From Antechinus flavipes (taxonomy: Eukaryota): DNA of 64,000 nt. Each line of letters begins with the position of its first letter. The first letter of the stretch is position 1. Where the stretch lies: assembly GCF_016432865.1 (NCBI RefSeq), contig NC_067400.1:624216001-624280000 (forward strand), read 5' to 3'. The notes under the pieces were generated by a model that worked only from the letters and a program-made list of their open reading frames with translations, made no database searches and was not told the DNA's origin. The position numbers were made by a program, and so were the translations under genes. Shown here piece after piece: positions 32,401 to 42,799 of the stretch.

Positions 32401-32884
32401 GGGGGGAGGGAGGTGAAGACAAAGCCTGGATGAGGCTCACAGAAGGGCCACAGCCGGAATCCAAACGCCCTCTTTTGGTAAGCGGGGAAATGGACTCAGG
32501 AAGAGAAATATACTTGATTCTGGGCAGACAGGAAGCTTCTAATTCACCCCCCCACCGCTGCTCTAGGGCCCCGAGGAAGATGTCCCTGGGTGGGGGCTCA
32601 AAGTTAAGGGCTAAGACAGTCAGGATTGAGTTAGAGATTCCCTCACCCAGGAAGGAGGCAAAGCTGTTCTTGTCGATGAGAATCCAGAGACCAAAGCAGA
32701 AGACAAGGCTGCCCAGGACCTGAGGAGGCAGGGAGGGTTGAGTCGGGGACCAGACATGGCTGCAGGACGGTGTGGGCGGGGTGGGGGTGGGAGCAGGGGT
32801 TGGGGTGGTTTAACTCACGAAGAAGAAGACGTTGAAGACAAAAAGGAAATATTTGATGAGGCTGAGACAGCCCTTATCCACCAT
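29486..32884 (-). CDS. CD37: CD37 tetraspanin, canonical form about 331 aa
   Basis: Exons: 32819-32884 (MVDKGCLSLIKYFLFVFNVFFF), 32647-32719, 32252-32376 (LLGCLGAIKEIRCLLGL), 31954-32028, 31435-31539 (WDFVQFQ), 30878-31267 (LRCCGW...RVPCSC...LC), 30675-30758 (GC...WLHNNLISIVG), 29486-29563 (FLCRNLDHVYNKLSRYS*). Phases are consistent. Confidence 0.97.
29714..29989 (-). CDS. Candidate alternative terminal exon of CD37 (91 aa)
   Basis: Branch point CTGAC and acceptor gtcccgttgcag. Phase 0 matches the donor at 30675. It begins with hydrophobic VVAVALTLVLL, and the stop TAA overlaps AATAAA (29713-29718). Confidence 0.55.
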   Translation of the reverse strand: MVAVALTLVLLPHARAWGSRCQGLEGETSASGGVGNSGSGTPLSNQGTLFGSASWGSQPTVVGCWLPRKRLTSRRSFLWSACRLGGSPSCE

Positions 32885-33229
32885 GTTCTTCACTTGGGTG
32901 TTACTGACAGAAGACCCAGGGGACACAGAGACTTGGAGATCCTGAGAGACACAAGTCAAGATTTCAAGTCTCACTCCTGCCTCGGAGTGCCTTGACTCTT
33001 CTCCCACTGTCACCCCCGAGACACCACGGGCTCCAAATCTTATCAGTTCTGAATTCACTCATCGGCGAGAGAAAGAATAGAGCAACAAACTGCGTATGCA
33101 ACTGAAAAAAGAGCTAGAAAATGAAACCACGATATCTATCTAGTTATCAAGGATCATCGACAAAAAAAGAAAAAACAAAAGGGTCAGTCCCTGTCCCAGA
33201 AAATTTTTTATTCTACTGGGGCACACAGG

Positions 33230-33450
33230 TCAGCTAAGAGGGGAAGTAGCTAGGACCAAGAGTCGTCTTGACTGAGTTCAAATCCAGCCTCCAACTCTTA
33301 GTAACTGTGTAACCCTGGGCAAGTCACTTTAAGTGTTTGTCTCAGTTGTTCATCTGCCAAGTGAGCTGGAGAAGGAAATGGCAAACCACTCCAGTATCTC
33401 TGCCAAGAAACCCTAAGAGGGTCGTGAAGAATTAGACACAACAGAGACCC
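33230..33450 (+). mobile_element. Mar1/MIR-type marsupial SINE
   Basis: Core gttcaaatccagcctc...ctgggcaagtcactt and tail ggagaaggaaatggcaaaccactccagtatctctgccaagaaa. Confidence 0.75.
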
Positions 33451-34419
33451 ACAACGTAAAAAAAGAATTCTGGGGTTTGGTTTTTGGACAGAAGGAGGAA
33501 GCACTATGAACTGAGGGAAATGGGAAAGAGCTCTTGTAGCACTTGAATCTTGAATCCACTCCAAAGTGAAACAATTGAAATAGCCTTTGATTTTCTAGGG
33601 CCTTCAGGCTCTCCATTTCTTCTCTCCCTTTTGCCCTGCCTAAGACCTCTCATGGCTCCCCTCTGACTCTAGGGCCGTTTTCTCTCCCCAGCCTGCATTC
33701 CAGTCTGTTTGAGTTCTCTTTCCTGAACTAATTTTCCCCATCTTCTCCACTCTAACTACAAGAAGGTTCTCTTTCTGTGTTCTGGTCTTTCCCCACTACG
33801 CCTGTGCATTCACATTGCAGGTCTATGGCTGTAGCCTCTGAGGTCTCCGTGCTCTGACCAATGGACAGAATCTCCATGTTGGTAAGAACAAGATTCCCTG
33901 AGGAGGGAAGGGATTCCCTGAAGAGATTCCCTCTAGAGGGAAGAAGTTTGGAAAGAGGAGTGCTGATTCTGTAGTCCTGAGGACTTGGCTTCAAAGCCTG
34001 CCTCAGATTCTTGCTTCTAGTGTGAGCCTGGCCAAGTCACTTTAGCTCTCTTGGTCTCAATACTCTCTTCCCCACAATTCTCATGATTTTTCATGCTGTG
34101 ATCTTTCTTCAACCCCCCAACTCTAGCATAGCTTCCTTCAGGAAGCCTTTCCTGATCCCTCAGCCCAGGGCACCTCTCATCAGATTGTCCCAAAGCCTTA
34201 GCTTTGGCCCCTTTGCTGCAAGGAATAGCGCTCTCAGAGCTTACAATCTAGTGAGGGAAACGTGAGCAGAAATGAGCTCGGTGCTTTATAAAATAGCCGG
34301 TGCTGAATGTGGAAGGGAGAGAGAGGCTGAGAGAGGGAGAAAGGGAGGCCATCAGAGGGAGATTCCCAAAGAGGAAGCAGCCGCAGTCCCCCTCCTCCCA
34401 GCTTCGCAACAAACACAAA

Positions 34420-35840
34420 TACAGCAACAGATCCAGACTCACACACAGACACAGACACAGGTACAGACACCGACACAGATATAGCAACAGACCCAAAGTC
34501 ACACACAGACACAGACACAGACCCAGATACATCAACAAACACAAATACAGCAACAGACCCAGATTCTCACACATAGACACAGACACAGGTACAGACACCG
34601 ACACAGATATAGCAACAGACTCAGACTCACACACAGACACAGACACAGACACAGGTACAGACACCGACACAGATATAGCAACAGACCCAAAGTCACACAC
34701 AGACACAGACACAGACCCAGATACATCAACAAACACAAATACAGCAACAGACCCAGATTCTCACACATAGACACAGACACAGGTACAGACACCGACACAG
34801 ATATAGCAACAGACTCAGACTCACACACAGACACAGACACAGACACAGGTACAGACACCGACACAGATATAGCAACAGACCCAAACTCACTCACAGGCAC
34901 TGACACAGACACAGGTACAGACACTGACACAGATATAGCAACAGACCCAAACTCACACACAGACACACACACAGACACAGGTACAGACACCGACACAGAT
35001 ATAGCAACAGACTCAGACTCACACACAGACACAGACACAGGTACAGATATAGCAACAGACTCAAACTCACACACAGACACAGACACAGACACAGGTACAG
35101 ACACCGACACAGATATAGCAACAGACCCAAACTCACTCATAGGCACTGACACAGATATAGCAACAGACCCAAAGTCACACACAGACACACACACAGACCC
35201 AGATACATCAACAAACACAAATACAGCAACAGACCCAGATTCTCACCCAGACACAGACACAGGTACAGACACCGACACAGATATGGCAACAGACTCAGAC
35301 TCACACACGGACACAGACACAGACACAGGTACAGACACCGACACAGATATAGCAACAGACCCAAACTCACTCATAGGCACTGACACAGATATAGCAACAG
35401 ACCCAAAGTCACACACAGACACAGACACAGACACAGACCCAGATACATCAACAAACACAAATACAGCAACAGACCCAGATTCTCACCCAGCCACAGAAAC
35501 AGGTACAGACACCGACACAGATATAGACACACAGCACGGATATACAGACAGATATAGACACAGACAGAGACAGACATAGACATCGATGCATCATAGATAC
35601 AGGACATAAAACACACACACATACATATAGACGCAGATGCAGACACGCACACACATATACAAAAACAGACCCACAGACACAGATACCGATAGACACAGAT
35701 ACACTGACATAGGTACAGACACAAGACACAGATTCAGGCACATAGACACAGATATGGACAGAGTCACAGACAAACACACAGAGACACAGATATGGATAGA
35801 CACACAGACCCAGACCGATCACAGACACAGGTACACACAC
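34420..35840. repeat. (ACAGAC)n-derived compound repeat with higher-order units; UG-rich on the minus strand
   Basis: acacagacacagac runs alternate with atatagcaacagacccaaa blocks. Minus frames are broken by stops. Confidence 0.95.
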
Positions 35841-37858
35841 ACCTCCTCTAGGTCCCTGGTCATCTTGGTTTTCTCTGAGTCCCAACTTTCCTTGGGGTCC
35901 CTGATCTCCTCAGAACTGTCTGAAGTCCTGGTCTCAGGCTCTTCAGGTTTTCTGCTATCCTCAAATCTCACAAAACCTTTTCTCTTTCTCTCCCTCGGGT
36001 AGCTGGTCTCTTTAGAATTCTCTGAATCCCTGACCTCAGTCTTTTTTGGGGTCCTGATTTCCCCTAGCTCCCTGGTTTCTGCAGACTCCTCTGGACCCCT
36101 GATCTCAGTTTTCTCTGACCCTCTGGTCTCTTCAGTCTTCTCTGGGCCTTTGATCTCAATTTCTTCTGGGCCCCTGGGCCCCTGAACCTCCTCTGAGTCC
36201 GTGGGCCCCTGAGCCTCCTCTGAGCCCCTGAGCCCCTGAGACTCCTCTGAGCTCCTGGGCCCCTGAGCCTCCTCTGAGCCCCTGGGCCCCTGAGCCTCCT
36301 CTGAGTCCCTGAGCCCCTGAGACTCCTCTGAGCCCCTGGGCCCCTGAATCTCCTCTGAGTCCCTGAGCCCCTGAGACTCCTCTGGGCCCCTGATCTCAGT
36401 TTTCTCTGACCCTCTGGTCCCTTCAGTCTTCTCTGGGCCTTTGATCTCAATTTCCTCTGGGCCCCTGGGCCCCTGAGCCTCCTCTGAGTCCCTGAGCCCC
36501 TGAGCCTCCTCTGAGTCCCTGAGCCCCTGAGACTCCTCTGGGCCCCTGATCTCAGTTTTCTCTGACCCTCTGGTCCCTTCAGTCTTCTCTGGGCCTTTGA
36601 TCTCAATTTCCTCTGGGCCCCTGAGCCCCTGAGCCTCCTCTGGGCCCCTGAGCCCCTGAGACTCCTCTGGGCCCCTGATCTCAGTTTTCTCTGACCCTCT
36701 GGTCCCTTCAGTCCCTTCAGTCTTCTCTGGGCCTTTGATCTCAATTTCCTCTGGGCCTCTGGGCCCCTGAGCCTCCTCTGAGTCCCTGAGCCCCTGAGAC
36801 TCCTCTGGGCCCCTGATTTCAGTTATCTCTGACCCTCTGGTCCCTTCAGTCTTCTCTGGGCCTTTGATCTCAATTTCCTCTGGGCCCCTGGGCCCCTGAG
36901 CCTCCTCTGAGTCCCTGAGCCCCTGAGTCTCCTCTGGGGTCCTGAGCCCCTGAGCCTCCTCTGAGTCCCTGAGCCCCTGAGACTCCTCTGAGCTCCTGGG
37001 CCCCTGAGCCTCCTCTGAGTCCCTGGGCCCCTGAGCCTCCTCTGAGTCCCTGAGCCCCTGAGACTCCTCTGAGCCCCTGGGCCCCTGAACCTCCTCTGAG
37101 TCCCTGAGCCCCTGAGACTCCTCTGGGCCCCTGATCTCTGTTTTCTCTGACCCTCTGGTCCCTTCAGTCTTCTCTGGGCCTTTGATCTCAATTTCCTCTG
37201 GGCCCCTGGGCCCCTGAGCCTCCTCTGAGTCCCTGAGCCCCTGAGCCTCCTCTGAGTCCCTGAGCCCCTGAGACTCCTCTGGGCCCCTGATCTCAGTTTT
37301 CTCTGACCCTCTGGTCCCTTCAGTCTTCTCTGGGCCTTTGATCTCAATTTCCTCTGGGCCCCTGAGCCCCTGAGCCTCCTCTGGGCCCCTGAGCCCCTGA
37401 GACTCCTCTGGGCCCCTGATCTCAATTTTCTCTGACCCTCTGGTCCCTTCAGTCCCTTCAGTCTTCTCTGGGCCTTTGATCTCAATTTCCTCTGGGCCTC
37501 TGGGCCCCTGAGCCTCCTCTGAGTCCCTGAGCCCCTGAGACTCCTCTGGGCCCCTGATTTCAGTTATCTCTGACCCTCTGGTCCCTTCAGTCTTCTCTGG
37601 GCCTTTGATCTCAATTTCCTCTGGGCCCCTGGGCCCCTGAGCCTCCTCTGAGTCCCTGAGCCCCTGAGTCTCCTCTGGGGTCCTGAGCCCCTGAGCCTCC
37701 TCTGAGTCCCTGAGCCCCTGAGACTCCTCCGGGGTCCTGATTTCCTCAGATGTCTGTAGACCACTGGTATCTTGAAAGCTATGAGGGGCTCCTGCTTCCT
37801 CTCGTTTTCTGGTCACTGTTGTCTCTGAGGCCTGAGGGGATCTCTCCCTAGGCTTCAT
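35819..37858 (-). CDS. 679-codon Glu/Gly/Arg-rich tandem-repeat ORF; probable large coding exon upstream of CD37
   Basis: Acceptor cccacgtccctag lies 4 nt before gccATG. The frame is uninterrupted through about 1.8 kb of 24/27-nt units and through degenerate non-repeat flanks. A phase-0 donor GAG|gtgtgt lies at 35843/35842. Confidence 0.7.
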   Translation of the reverse strand: MKPRERSPQASETTVTRKREEAGAPHSFQDTSGLQTSEEIRTPEESQGLRDSEEAQGLRTPEETQGLRDSEEAQGPRGPEEIEIKGPEKTEGTRGSEITEIRGPEESQGLRDSEEAQGPRGPEEIEIKGPEKTEGTEGTRGSEKIEIRGPEESQGLRGPEEAQGLRGPEEIEIKGPEKTEGTRGSEKTEIRGPEESQGLRDSEEAQGLRDSEEAQGPRGPEEIEIKGPEKTEGTRGSEKTEIRGPEESQGLRDSEEVQGPRGSEESQGLRDSEEAQGPRDSEEAQGPRSSEESQGLRDSEEAQGLRTPEETQGLRDSEEAQGPRGPEEIEIKGPEKTEGTRGSEITEIRGPEESQGLRDSEEAQGPRGPEEIEIKGPEKTEGTEGTRGSEKTEIRGPEESQGLRGPEEAQGLRGPEEIEIKGPEKTEGTRGSEKTEIRGPEESQGLRDSEEAQGLRDSEEAQGPRGPEEIEIKGPEKTEGTRGSEKTEIRGPEESQGLRDSEEIQGPRGSEESQGLRDSEEAQGPRGSEEAQGPRSSEESQGLRGSEEAQGPTDSEEVQGPRGPEEIEIKGPEKTEETRGSEKTEIRGPEESAETRELGEIRTPKKTEVRDSENSKETSYPRERKRKGFVRFEDSRKPEEPETRTSDSSEEIRDPKESWDSEKTKMTRDLEEVCVYLCL

Positions 37859-38999
37859 GGCTCTAGGGACGTGGGGGACAGAGAGGGATGGACTGGGGGT
37901 GCAGAGCAGCCCCTGCTTGGGACTCTGCCTTCATCCAGGTCTCCTTAGCCTAGCCCAAATCAGAGCAGGCTCTACCTCATAGAGACCAGATGACCTCATG
38001 GATGAGAGGCTCCGGGTCACTTGGCCCGGCCCTCTGTGTACCTCTCTCCCTCAAAGGCTGAGAGGAACCTGGAATGCCCAGCAGGAGGGGACCTTGGAGA
38101 GCGCCGTGGGTCTGAGGAGGAAAGGGAGGCTGGGGGGGGGGTCCTGTGGCTGCCTCAGGACTCCTCCCTGTCCCAGAGTCCCCGGCCTGCACCTGTCTTC
38201 CTCAGTGTTTGTCTCCTCTCTCCCGGACCCACCATGTGTTTCTATCTCTGTGCCTCCATGCCTCAGCTTATGGGCTGAGCCTCTCCCTTTCTGTGTAGCT
38301 GGGTCTTCCCCTGAGTCTCTGCCCCCTGGGGACACAGCGCCCGTCACCTCCCTCAACAACCCCCTCAGGAAGTATAGTGACTTCCTCCCAGGTCGCAGCC
38401 GCCGCCTGAGGAAGTGGGGGGAAGGGAGGCCGCCCAAGAAGGGGAACACCAGAGCTCTCGATGGCGCGCGGGGCTTGGGAAAGGGGGGGCTCATAGGCAA
38501 GGACCTCGTGTCGGAGGGGCGCGGGGACAGCAATGGAGGGAGCCCCGGAGTCGCCCGGTAACGAATAACGGGCTTGGAGAGGCTTCCCTCTTGATAGCTA
38601 GAGATCTCTGGCTGAGCTTCTGTTGGGAGAGGCGCTTGGCGCAAGGAAAACGGGGAAGGGGCTTGGAGATCGTTTCCGAAGGCGGCGGGGAGCTCGGGGG
38701 CCGTGTGTTGTGCGGGCGAGCGAGGGGGGGTCCAAAATGCCGGACAAAAGGCGGACGTGGGAAGGAGAAAGCTGGGCTTCGGCCTGAAGCGTCCCACCCC
38801 GCGTGGCTTGGGGGTGCAGGTGTGCGGGACCCCCGGGGTGCGGAGAAAGCCGCCACAGGGCCCCTCAAGCGCTTAGACGCCCCCCGGGCTAGAAGGGAAG
38901 GTGCGCTCACCTGGCAAGAAGCCTCGGCTCGGGGTCGGGAGGCCAGCGGCTAGGCTGCGTGACCGCCCACTCGAGTTTGGGATGGACTGTGGGAGACTT

Positions 39000-39200
39000 G
39001 ACCTCCCAGGGCGAGCAGGCAGGCGGGGGGGGCGGCATCCAGGTTCCCCGCCTCCCTTGTCCGGGAAGGGTCAGAAGGCGATGATTGGCTTGTGCTTAGA
39101 GGGGGCGGGGCATGCTTCCGGAGGCCCCGCCCCCGAAAGACTTGGCTTGGGGAGTGGGCGTGGTCGTCTTGGGCTCTTCCCGCCCCTCCCAAAGTGACAA
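39000..39200 (-). promoter_or_regulatory. Candidate upstream promoter (GC boxes plus CCAAT)
   Basis: CCAAT on - at 39084-39088. GC boxes at 39101-39110, 39125-39133 and 39156-39163. Downstream GT-AG mini-exon candidates at 38348-38405 and 37976-38057. Confidence 0.4.
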
Positions 39201-39589
39201 TCCCATCAGCTCCAGTTCTGGGTTTGCGCAGTGTTCCCGAGTTGAGTGGGAGGAAGGCTCCTGGGTTCTAGTCTAGGGTCTAGGTGGACTGAGGCAGCCC
39301 CCGAGTTCTAGATCTGAGTTCCCTCTGGGGGCCGGGGGAGGGAGGTGCCCTAGAGTCCAGGTTCAGTCTTTAGCTGGAGGTTTGTTGGGGGTCGGGACGT
39401 GACTCCCGGATTCCAGGTCCAGGGCGACTTTTAGTGTCTAGGTTTGGAGGTACCCGAGTCACTTCCTGATTGGGGTTCTGAGCTTTGGGGGGTGGCTGTT
39501 CGGTGGGCTCGGTCCTAGGTGTGTGTATTTGTGGGGGAGGTGACTCCCAGGTTCTAGCATCTGGGGAAAGCTCGCAGGGTGCCTGTGTG

Positions 39590-40280
39590 TGAAAGAGAGA
39601 CAGAGAGGGAGAGACACAGAAAAGGGGGGGGGGAGGGAGGGGGAGGGACGGAGGAGAGAGGGGGAGGGGGGGAGAGAAGGGGAGAGAGGGGGGAGAAAGG
39701 GAAAAAGAAGGGGGGAAACCAGCAGGAGGAGACAGAGAGAGGGAGAGACACAGAAAAGGGAGAAAGGGGAGAGAGAGGGGGACAGAGGGAGGAGAGAGGG
39801 GGAGAGGGGGGGAGAGGGGGGGAGAGAGGGGGGGAAGAGAGGGGGAGAGAGGGGGGAGAAAGGGAAAAAGAAGGGGGGAAACCAGCAGGAGGAGACAGAG
39901 AGAGGGAGAGACACAGAAAAGGGAGAGAGAGGGGGAGGGAGGGGGAGGGACGGAGGAGAGAGGGGGGAGAGGGGGAGAGAGACAGACAGATAGAGGCAGA
40001 GAGAGACCGGCAGGAGGAGACAGAGAGAGGGAGAGACAGACAGAAAAGGGAGAGAGGCAGAGAGAGGGGGAGGGAACGGGAGAGAGAGGGGAGAAAGGGA
40101 AAAAGAAGGGGGGAGAGACAGACAGAGGCAGAGAGAGACAGAGAGGAGGGAGAAAAGGAAGAGGAAAGTGGGGGGAGAGACAGAGAGAGGCAGAGAGAGA
40201 CAGAGAGAAGGGGAAAAGGAAGAGGAAAGTGGGGGGAGAGACAGAGAGAGGCAGAGAGAGGCAGAGACACACAGAGACAG
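39590..40280. repeat. Purine (GA)-rich low-complexity tract with internal duplications
   Basis: Almost pure A/G on +. Block gaaaaagaagggggaaaccagcaggaggagacagagag is repeated. Confidence 0.95.
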
Positions 40281-42799
40281 AGCCAGCAGTAAGGGACCCC
40301 TAGTGGAAGAGCTCAGTTCTAGATATCCCTTGGGAAATGGGTGTGAGGAAGGAGTGTAATGGAAAGTGAGGCCATTTTCCCTGGGCCTCTCCTGGCTCCG
40401 CCTCTGGGATCTCAGACCAGGTGTCCCCCTCAGACCTAGTTTGTTTCTTCCCCTGCAAAGGGAGGGGCTCAGGCTCTATCTCTGTGGGCCGGCACTCTTT
40501 GGGCCCCGTGAGGTCTGCCCTTCCCCCACACACTCTGTCACCCATCTACAGGATGGGGATTTGGGAAGGCGGGGCAATGGCCGAGGGGCCGGGCTGGGGC
40601 ATCAAGGATGGAGAGCTGGGGGCCCAAGGGGGTATTTCTGTGGGGCCGGGCTCCTTTGGGCCCTCCCTACCAGCACGGAAGCGGGGGCCTGGGTGCCATT
40701 TTCCAAGCCATGCAGAGTGCAGGGAGGCTGGGACAGGGAGGGCTGGCTCCCTGGGGAGGGCCCTGCTTAGCTCTGGAGGCCTCCTCTTCCGCTCTCACCC
40801 AGCAGACACCTGTCTCTTCTGCTCTTTACCTGGGGGATTTCCCTGTTATTTACAGAGATGCCTTGGGGAAGCCCCTGAACTTCCGGGGGGGGGGCAGGTC
40901 TGGAGGTGTGGGCTCAGCGAGCTTCCTGATGGCCCGTCCGGCCCCGTACGAGAGGGGTCTGCAGTGGGCTGCCTCCCAGGAGTCCGGCTCCGCTCAGCCC
41001 GGTGGCACCGGCCCGAGCGGCTCTCACTGTTGTCATTGCTGGGGGGGTGGGGGGTGCTGCTGCCTGCTCAGGTGGGGGAGCACTGGGGCTGTGTGGGCTG
41101 GGGGTCAGGGAGGAGCCCAATCTGGCCCCGAACTTTCTTGCTCCCCTTGGGGACGCAGCTGAGTGTTCCTGGGTGACACCGACAGTTGATTTCTGGTACC
41201 ATAATGCCTTGGAGTGTGGGGGGCGGGGCTCTCTGTCTCTTCTTGGCCCAGGGCACCCAGTCTAGGGGAAGGCGGATGGCTGTGGCCACTGCTCCCGCAG
41301 ACACTGACCCTGCTGATCGTGTTGCCCCATGCGCCTCCTTGCCCTGGAACCCGTGGATCCCTGAGCTCTCTCCTAGCCCAGCCTAGCTGTGGCTCCTGAC
41401 GAATGTCTCCCTTCCCGGATTTTGTATTTCTCTGTGAGGTTTCCCTCTTTTTCCTGCTTTGCGTCCTCATCCAGGGCTCCCTGTGGCTGATGGGCTCTTG
41501 CACTCGGGAGAACATCTGGAGTCACTGCGTGAGCCCCGAGCCTGGGGCGTCCCAAGGGTGAGCCCTGAGCCCGGAGCCTGGGACAGGCCCAAGGGTGATC
41601 CTGGAGCCCGGAGCCCGGAGCCCCGGGGCAGTCCCACGGGGGAAGGCTGCCTCTCCGAGCCGCTGTTTTCCCGTAGTTGGGTTCATTTCCCCAGCCATTA
41701 AGCCCCTTATGGGCCGCATACAAACCGGAAAAGAAGCGCCCCGACCTCCGGGAGTTCCCAGGCTACGGGAAACAAGCTTTACCCAGAGAAGCAGACGCAA
41801 AGCGAGGGGGGGGTGGGGGGGGAACATCCGGGACTTCAGCGTGGGGGTGGGGGCCGGCCCCGGGGGCGAGCTGGGAGCCGGGGGCTTCAGGAGAGCGGCG
41901 AGCAGCAGCCTGCCCCGCGGCAGGAAGGTGAGGGCCTGGCGTGCGCAGCCAGGAGCGGGAGCCAGTGCGCTCCCGTGGCCTCCCCGATGTCTCTCCGGGG
42001 AGGGAGCGAGCGCCCCGGGACAGGCTGGCAGCCCGGCACAGGCCCAGCGGGAGGAGCTGCTCCCAGCAGGAAGTGACCCGGTCACACTTGCACTTGAGGA
42101 AACGCCGCCCGGGGCCGGGGGGAGGGCCAGGGCCAGAGGCCAGCTGGAAGGCGGTTATGGAAGGCCGCGGGCTGCCGGGGCTCCTCTGGGCGGGGTGAGG
42201 AAGGTGTGCCGGGGTGGGGGCCTGGCACCTAGGGCCGGGAGCACCCAGACACCAAACGGCTCCGGCCCGTGCCTCTGGCAGACGCAGGGGAGCAGTGGGG
42301 GGAGGGGGGAGTTAGGTGTGGGGGCTCCACGGGCCTCCCCGTCCCCGACTGGTGGCAGCCACAGCAGAGACTTTTTCTGGGCTTGTGGTCGGGAAGATCT
42401 CAGCCGCTTCCCAGCTGCGAGACCCCAGCCAAGTGACTTAGCTGCTGTCGGCCTCAGTTTCCCCACCTGTAAAATGGGCTAAATGAGATGCTGTTTAAGC
42501 TCTTCTGGAGCCGGTGCACTCTCGATTGGACTTGATGCCACAGAGGTCCTGTTCGGTTCTGGGATTTATTGCGTCTATGATTCAGAGATGGAGACAACAG
42601 CGAAAGATGGGGAAGGTGGAGGCGGCAGGACCATCGTGGGCATTGGGCTGGGAGCCGCGGGAGGTCGCGGACAGTCCGAGGTGAATGCAGTGGTGGGGGA
42701 TTAGTCCCTTTCTGAAGGGGCGCCTTCAATAGGAGAGAGAAAACTGAGGGAAAACACAACTCTGGGCTCCTATTAGAAGGGCAGTTGGAGGGAAAAGTT

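Follow-up and report, generated by a model that had tools for sequence, protein, structure and literature searches.

A repeat-rich open reading frame upstream of CD37 in Antechinus flavipes: a candidate marsupial-specific exon for a long tetraspanin isoform

Introduction

Does the long acidic repeat open reading frame (ORF) that precedes CD37 in the marsupial Antechinus flavipes belong to that tetraspanin gene, stand as a gene of its own, or encode nothing? The DNA analysed is a stretch of 64,000 nucleotides (RefSeq assembly GCF_016432865.1, contig NC_067400.1, positions 624,216,001 to 624,280,000 of the forward strand), hereafter called the window and numbered from its first letter; the ORF and CD37 both lie on its minus strand. 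An earlier reading of these letters alone (the sequence-only reading) had proposed a giant CD37 isoform in which 672 codons of the ORF are spliced in frame to the CD37 start exon. We find that the ORF has homologues in the CD37 models of three other marsupials, where they form N-terminal extensions that end at the donor proposed here. We tentatively favour the explanation that the ORF is a coding exon of the CD37 locus, specific to marsupials and evolving very fast, and that its use is most likely in a minor long isoform.

Very short cytoplasmic tails are a defining trait of tetraspanins, and the N-terminus of CD37 faces the cytoplasm. The cytoplasmic tails of CD37 measure 8 to about 14 amino acids, and the N-terminal one carries a tyrosine in a motif like the immunoreceptor tyrosine-based inhibitory motif (ITIM) (PMC7765243).

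Results

Homologous extensions in marsupial CD37 models

A word-indexed search of 5.8 billion proteins gave three meaningful matches to the ORF product, all of them RefSeq entries named leukocyte antigen CD37 isoform X2, from the tammar wallaby (Notamacropus eugenii), the greater bilby (Macrotis lagotis) and the grey short-tailed opossum (Monodelphis domestica), which represent three marsupial orders. Single-sequence searches against these CD37 models returned E values of 1e-18 to 2e-4. The extension that precedes MAEKGCLSL... is 251 amino acids long in wallaby, 197 in bilby and 259 in opossum. The CD37 cluster contains isoforms X1-X4 of wallaby, X1-X2 of bilby and X1-X3 of opossum (the X1 accessions being XP_072463463, XP_074075873 and XP_056652701, respectively), and isoforms that begin at the canonical methionine occur alongside the long ones. 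In an exhaustive search of 1.84 billion representatives with a profile built from the four extensions, only the CD37 cluster was matched over the full profile length (289 bits, E 4e-81, positions 1-271); the 56 other matches, to collagen-like GxxGxx or other tandem-repeat proteins, were dismissed as repeat noise. As far as the searched libraries show, the repeat domain appears to be confined to marsupial CD37 models. A search across the extension-CD37 junction found no further species, and the C-terminal 126 amino acids matched none of the fragments of 69-220 amino acids, a class that includes proteins called on RNA assemblies. The 679-residue ORF product hit no Pfam family at E values up to 1, and its look-alikes in the ESM Atlas scored 0.85 at most, which is chance level.

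Overall identity between the ORF and the orthologous extensions is 42-45%. The N-terminus, of the form M...ERSLQAS...TR..EEAG.P, is shared by the window, bilby and opossum; the wallaby model is without it. A basic cluster followed by V(R/K)F is common to the window and the three species, with F632 invariant and the V/T-(R/K)-F core kept, and the RDL-E end is common to the ORF and the orthologous extensions. Exactly 35 amino acids separate VRF from RDL in the window, wallaby and bilby, which belong to three Australian orders, and across these orders the unique C-terminal segment carries no frame-breaking indels. By tblastn, the wallaby and bilby extensions end at 35843/35840 of the window, the next segment starting at 32896. 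Because the orthologous extensions end there, the donor picked by the sequence-only reading at 35843 is the orthologous donor, and the check that it named, conservation of the ORF upstream of CD37 in other marsupials, comes out in its favour.

The segment RKRKGFVRFED (residues 624-634 of the ORF) had been described as a basic cluster with an RVxF-like motif for docking PP1. The segment is present and its core is conserved; the docking motif did not hold up. The ELM-type RVxF pattern [RK]-x(0,1)-[VIL]-{P}-[FW] occurs neither in the window ORF nor in the extensions of wallaby, bilby and opossum, because two residues stand between the basic residue and V. Any PP1-docking role of the basic cluster and VRF would be a guess.

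The proposed isoform had also been called undescribed. This remains true of the literature searched, in which no paper on a marsupial CD37 extension or on N-terminal extensions of tetraspanins was found, and is not true of sequence databases, where three marsupial RefSeq model sets hold it. A long CD37 isoform of this kind is already predicted by automatic annotation; what is specific to this genome is the size of 672 codons and the 19-codon linker described below.

Candidate splice sites between the ORF and CD37

The elements on which the sequence-only reading was built are all in the sequence: the ORF, the 672 codons to the donor, the acceptor just ahead of the ORF, and the acceptor before CD37 with its open run-in. 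Donors and acceptors on the minus strand between 32800 and 40000 were scored with a rough position-weight matrix. From the ORF start codon at 37858 to 35843 there are exactly 672 codons, and GTGTGT comes next (donor GAG/GTGTGT, the slash marking the splice boundary). This donor scores 8.4 bits and ranks second in the scored region, the other GTs of its (GT)5 run reaching 2.8 bits at most. The acceptor ahead of the ORF, ...cccacgtccctag/AGCC ATG (...gtccctag/AGCC), follows a stretch with 82% pyrimidines and precedes the ATG by four bases. About 2.9 kb downstream of the ORF, the acceptor before CD37 reads ...tgtgtctctcag/GAT at 32941, from which 19 stop-free codons (DLQVSVSPGSSVSNTQVKN) run in frame to the CD37 ATG. 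The A of that ATG is at 32884; it had been placed at 32885. Acceptor 32941 is in phase with both donor 35843 and the CD37 ATG, and the pairing of 35843 with 32941 is the sole strong in-frame pairing in the window. The acceptors at 32903 and 32892 could be joined in frame to later GTs of the (GT)5 run; these pairings were rejected, the donors scoring no more than 2.8 bits and the high-depth RNA contigs being unbroken through both acceptors.

Upstream of the ATG, the CD37 frame has no stop for 58 codons (32885-33058, minus strand). The stretch beyond acceptor 32941 is not coding, because relatives carry indels there that are not multiples of three (+1, +1, -2, +1 and -1 relative to the window, against zero between 32941 and the ATG).

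In an unspliced transcript, an upstream ORF (uORF) of 23 codons runs from an ATG at 37934 (37934-37863, minus strand). Its TAG stop shares bases with the acceptor AG, which is four bases ahead of the ORF ATG; use of this acceptor would remove the uORF, and the first ATG of the spliced form would be 37858.

Structure and composition of the ORF

The ORF consists of a long repeat array between two non-repeat flanks (Table 1). Tandem Repeats Finder reports periods of 27, 129, 156 and 267 nucleotides (nt) over 36165-37741. The units, which include EESQGLRDS, EEAQGPRGP, EEIEIKGP and EKTEGTRGS, are 8, 9 or 12 codons long (24, 27 or 36 nt), every one a multiple of three, and are assembled into 741-nt copies that differ at 5 of 841 compared positions (99.4% identity). 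The product would have 184 acidic versus 104 basic residues. The residues E, G, R, S and P abound in it, and disorder is predicted (mean hydropathy 0.315 versus a Uversky boundary of 0.456).

Within 35500-38100, the frame of the ORF contains 4 stops, none of them inside the ORF itself; the other two minus-strand frames have 15 and 41. On a T-poor strand with units of three-multiple length, openness within the array is by itself weak evidence of coding. Of 5000 dinucleotide shuffles, only 28 left the N- and C-terminal flanks together stop-free (p about 0.006). The earlier claim that repeat length variants preserve the frame and that the degenerate flanks stay open is upheld by these counts. A 1.4-kb compound microsatellite directly abuts the donor and is the source both of the (GT)5 run there and of the stop codon of the unspliced ORF; it also yields long spurious ORFs on both strands (VSVSVPVSV..., TDTDTD...).

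RNA from related species

The RNA evidence consists of Logan contigs from four runs of closely related organisms, A, B and C, with at least 90% likeness to the stretch 32780-38700. Contigs of the CD37 ATG exon reach depths of 780-805 (run X1), 512 (X4) and 305 (X11). In these three runs, which come from two related species, they extend from the exon 2 junction up to 32943/32944 and then end, 2-3 nt from acceptor 32941. Contigs of low depth (21.6 and 14) begin 30 bases inside this end and go on colinearly upstream. The overlap of low- and high-depth contigs, k-1 bases long, shows that the assembly graph branches at the acceptor, with the major partner lying off 32780-38700. An exon ending in CAG and joined to 32941 would match the genome for three extra bases, so that contigs would end at 32944, as seen in X4 and X11. 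For the ORF exon, whose last bases are GAG, the predicted contig end is 32943.

Transcription of the ORF region stands above background: its depth is about 5% of that of the CD37 exon, and neighbouring non-repeat bins have depths of 0-9. The region is represented by a single 879-nt contig of run X4 (organism A, depth 25.7), which covers 37936-37687 and 36177-35673 and is without 1509 nt of the array, that is, 2 x 741 + 27 nt or 503 codons. Frame-breaking variants in relatives had been named as the sign of a non-coding variable number tandem repeat (VNTR). The differences listed between the ORF and the organism A contig include a +3 insertion and this 1509-nt difference as the only length changes, and neither the frame-breaking length variants nor the stops in the candidate frame that a non-coding minisatellite should accumulate appear among them. 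Organism A has indels of -2, -2 and -1 in the 170 nt after the donor.

A short element at 33350-33416, resembling an interspersed repeat, is found in thousands of RNA contigs across all four runs, at a summed depth of up to 33,000, and each contig that enters it is broken there.

CD37 gene body and candidate promoter

A complete CD37 lies downstream of the ORF in the expected neighbourhood; all exons were recovered by tblastn, and the orthologues carry PF00335. Two alternative last exons follow 30624 (Table 1). About 0.5-1.3 kb upstream of the ORF is a CpG island (approximately 38400-39200; observed/expected CpG 0.56-0.93), whose minus strand carries GC boxes and a CCAAT box. The donor of the candidate first exon inside it, at 38911, scores 11.0 bits, the top value on the minus strand of 32800-40000. 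The island may be a promoter shared with the SLC6A16-like gene on its other side. A germline-type promoter and testis expression had been suggested for the long form; nothing in this analysis points to either. Beyond the island, a GA/CT-rich low-complexity block (39370-40292; periods of 10, 21, 54 and 163 nt) has open frames of 237-300 codons on each strand; it is probably non-coding.

Table 1. Positions of the features discussed, in window coordinates
Feature	Position	Strand	Remarks
Candidate non-coding exon 1 of CD37	38911..39037	-	...TGCCAG/GTGAGC; 127 nt without ATG; inside CpG island
ORF exon as proposed	35843..37862	-	acceptor AG 37864-37863; ATG 37858; 672 codons; donor after 35843
Full unspliced ORF, 679 amino acids	35819..37858	-	ATG start; ends ...RDLEE-VCVYLCL-stop; TGA 35821-35819 within GT-rich microsatellite
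Non-repeat N-terminus, about 45 amino acids (MKPRERSPQAS...)	37724..37858	-	common to bilby and opossum; M1 invariant
Higher-order tandem duplication	36159..37741	-	2.1 copies of a 741-nt block (247 codons) built from 24/27/36-nt units
Non-repeat C-terminal part, 86 amino acids	35843..36100	-	basic cluster and VRF (RKRKGFVRFED, 35989-35957); terminal RDLEE
Compound microsatellite, 1.4 kb	34409..35841		ACAGAC / GT-rich; 66-nt period, about 14 copies; directly abuts donor 35843
Sole AATAAA/ATTAAA between ORF and CD37 ATG exon	33207..33212	-	low-depth RNA contig of X1 (32915-33390) reads through
CD37 ATG exon	32819..32941	-	acceptor cag/GAT; 19 open codons; ATG 32884; donor GTGAGT from 32818
CD37 exons	32896-32819, about 32720-32645, 32395-32252, 32028-31951, 31539-31432, 31270-30878, 30761-30624	-	tblastn
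Long Gly/Ser/Trp-rich tail of bilby RefSeq isoform X1	29995-29717	-	alternative last exon; 59% identity
Canonical CD37 tail (...NKLSRYS)	29563-29489	-	alternative last exon; tblastn

Discussion

It is proposed that most CD37 mRNA would start at the CpG-island promoter, with the short non-coding exon spliced from donor 38911 to acceptor 32941 and translation from the canonical ATG at 32884. In the long isoform, the ORF exon would be included as an optional 2020-nt cassette through acceptor 37862, or would serve as an alternative first exon, and would be joined from 35843 to 32941, the only strong in-frame pair here. In the gene models of three other marsupial orders the domain stands ahead of the first transmembrane helix, where it would form a cytoplasmic N-terminal extension of CD37, and in-frame tandem duplication would, in part, have enlarged the exon to 672 codons in this genome. 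The extension would then sit directly before the ITIM-like motif (...KGCLSLIKYFLF...). We infer that the most likely effect of a bulky polyanionic extension with a conserved linear motif would be altered access or recruitment at the inhibitory tail of CD37. On a wider view, possible but doubtful in our judgement, marsupials gained a new cytoplasmic tetraspanin domain from a purine-rich minisatellite in the 5' region of CD37, as an exon found only in Metatheria that has been kept open for about 80 million years under near-zero residue constraint and ranges from 197 to 672 codons.

The giant isoform of the sequence-only reading is thus supported in its homology, its donor and its exon boundary at 32941, and not in its 35843-to-32941 junction. 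Several observations weigh against a CD37 exon. The joint was found in none of the Logan contigs of the four related-species RNA runs; since such contigs drop rare paths, this is weak evidence of absence. The 879-nt contig is unspliced and colinear through acceptor 37862, donor 35843 and the stop codon. The junction of the orthologous models, 2-5 codons before the ATG (...E/VKAM...), has no in-frame equivalent in the window, which reads caa-gtg with no AG directly before the GTG; the nearest AG (32894-32893) joined to donor 35843 gives GAG/TGA, an immediate stop. The RefSeq long isoforms are automatic Gnomon models and are present in only three annotated marsupials, Gracilinanus being without one. 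A second minus-strand frame is open for 220-252 codons. The substitutions point the same way: in the C-terminal part of the ORF, all 10 listed differences from the relative are non-synonymous (neutral expectation 0.77), which rejects omega of 0.5 or less at p < 0.01; 4 of the 5 differences between the 741-nt copies are non-synonymous; and variation among the 35 nine-codon units falls at codon positions 1 and 2, not 3, a test that is uninformative with only eight variable sites. The excess of synonymous over non-synonymous change expected under purifying selection was not found. Our tentative reading is that selection keeps the tail open, acidic and disordered and leaves its sequence largely unconstrained.

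The rival that survives best, unlikely in our estimate, is a non-coding reading. The region would be a purine-rich minisatellite in intron 1 of CD37 or upstream of the gene, transcribed at a low level and open as a result of its T-poor units of three-multiple length, and the RefSeq long isoforms would be the product of a pipeline that picks the longest ORF of an alternative 5' exon. The neutral-like substitutions, the units without third-position excess, the second open frame and the unspliced RNA contig all suit it, as do the wide variation in array length across species and the wallaby model that lacks the conserved N-terminus. Against it, the ORF, its start codon and its phase with CD37 have been kept across lineages that split roughly 80 million years ago, and the unique flanks are open beyond what shuffling readily produces. 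These flanks, moreover, are free of frame-breaking indels both between the three Australian orders, with their identical 35-residue spacing, and in comparison with the relative, whereas adjacent non-coding DNA has indels of -1 and -2.

We consider it more doubtful still that the ORF is a stand-alone gene, translated from its own unspliced or differently spliced transcript starting near 37946 into a soluble, acidic, disordered protein of 679 amino acids that ends in VCVYLCL. The X4 contig, which follows the genome colinearly from about 37946 past the ATG, the donor and the stop and then for at least 286 nt further, is what such a gene would yield; no junction to CD37 was seen in the four RNA runs, and the stop at 35819 is unchanged in the relative, with no differences listed within 35797-35862. 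Both protein searches speak against a separate gene, every homologue being fused to CD37 and none occurring separately among the 5.8 billion proteins or the 1.84 billion representatives. Conservation ends exactly at the donor (RDL-E), the seven-residue tail beyond it being derived from the microsatellite. The unspliced transcript would also carry the 23-codon uORF from ATG 37934, and the only poly(A) signal lies 2.6 kb downstream, where RNA reads through.

A separate question, which we judged on its own, is whether the exon is real and its 672-codon length the product of a mis-assembled, near-identical 741-nt tandem duplication; we think this improbable. The copies are nearly identical, and the contig of the relative is short by exactly 2 x 741 + 27 nt. 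The best own-species runs (taken as DNA) hold 0.46-0.50 of the sampled words of 35800-38000, versus 0.67-0.94 for CD37. The five differences between the copies, by contrast, point to two real copies, and a short-read graph can collapse repeats, so that the short form of the relative may itself be an artefact. We also rate 32944 lower as a transcription start than as a contig end made by the acceptor, given that the contig ends match a strong acceptor motif in three runs and that the low-depth contigs overlap the end by exactly k-1 bases, as at a branch.

If the CD37 exon is real, a disordered acidic domain of 200-690 amino acids at the inhibitory-tyrosine tail of CD37 would be an unusual tetraspanin architecture, and its origin would be a clean case of a lineage-specific exon that was born from a minisatellite and evolves rapidly in length. 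With a large acidic tail and a basic cluster with VRF beside the ITIM-like tyrosine, CD37 signalling would be isoform-dependent, and possibly VNTR-dependent, in marsupial leukocytes. The extension sits unremarked in the automatic annotations of three marsupials. Should the isoform not be made, the locus would serve as a caution that T-poor arrays of three-multiple units can create long "isoforms" in annotation pipelines.

Set beside the marsupial RefSeq CD37 models, the window shows the same acidic repeat extension rich in E, R, G, P and T, upstream of CD37 on the same strand. It differs in length, with 672 codons here versus 197-259 there, and in the joint, which in the models falls 2-5 codons before the ATG and here would include the 19-codon linker given by the sole strong in-frame pairing. 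Compared with canonical CD37 and other tetraspanins, an extension of 200-690 amino acids before the ITIM-like motif has no described counterpart in the literature searched. A parallel in organisation is the GARP/CNGB1 locus of rod photoreceptors, where a glutamate-rich disordered repeat region is made in two forms, one being the cytoplasmic N-terminus of a membrane protein and the other free soluble proteins; by analogy, these two alternatives would correspond to the long CD37 isoform and to the stand-alone gene considered above. The parallel is without a sequence relationship (the profile search returned none), and the membrane partner there is a channel subunit, not a tetraspanin. Coding minisatellites such as the VNTR exons of mucins and involucrin resemble the ORF in their units of three-multiple length, higher-order duplications, large length differences between species and weak residue constraint. 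Unlike those extracellular or structural regions, the region here would be cytoplasmic and acidic, and it is framed by conserved unique flanks.

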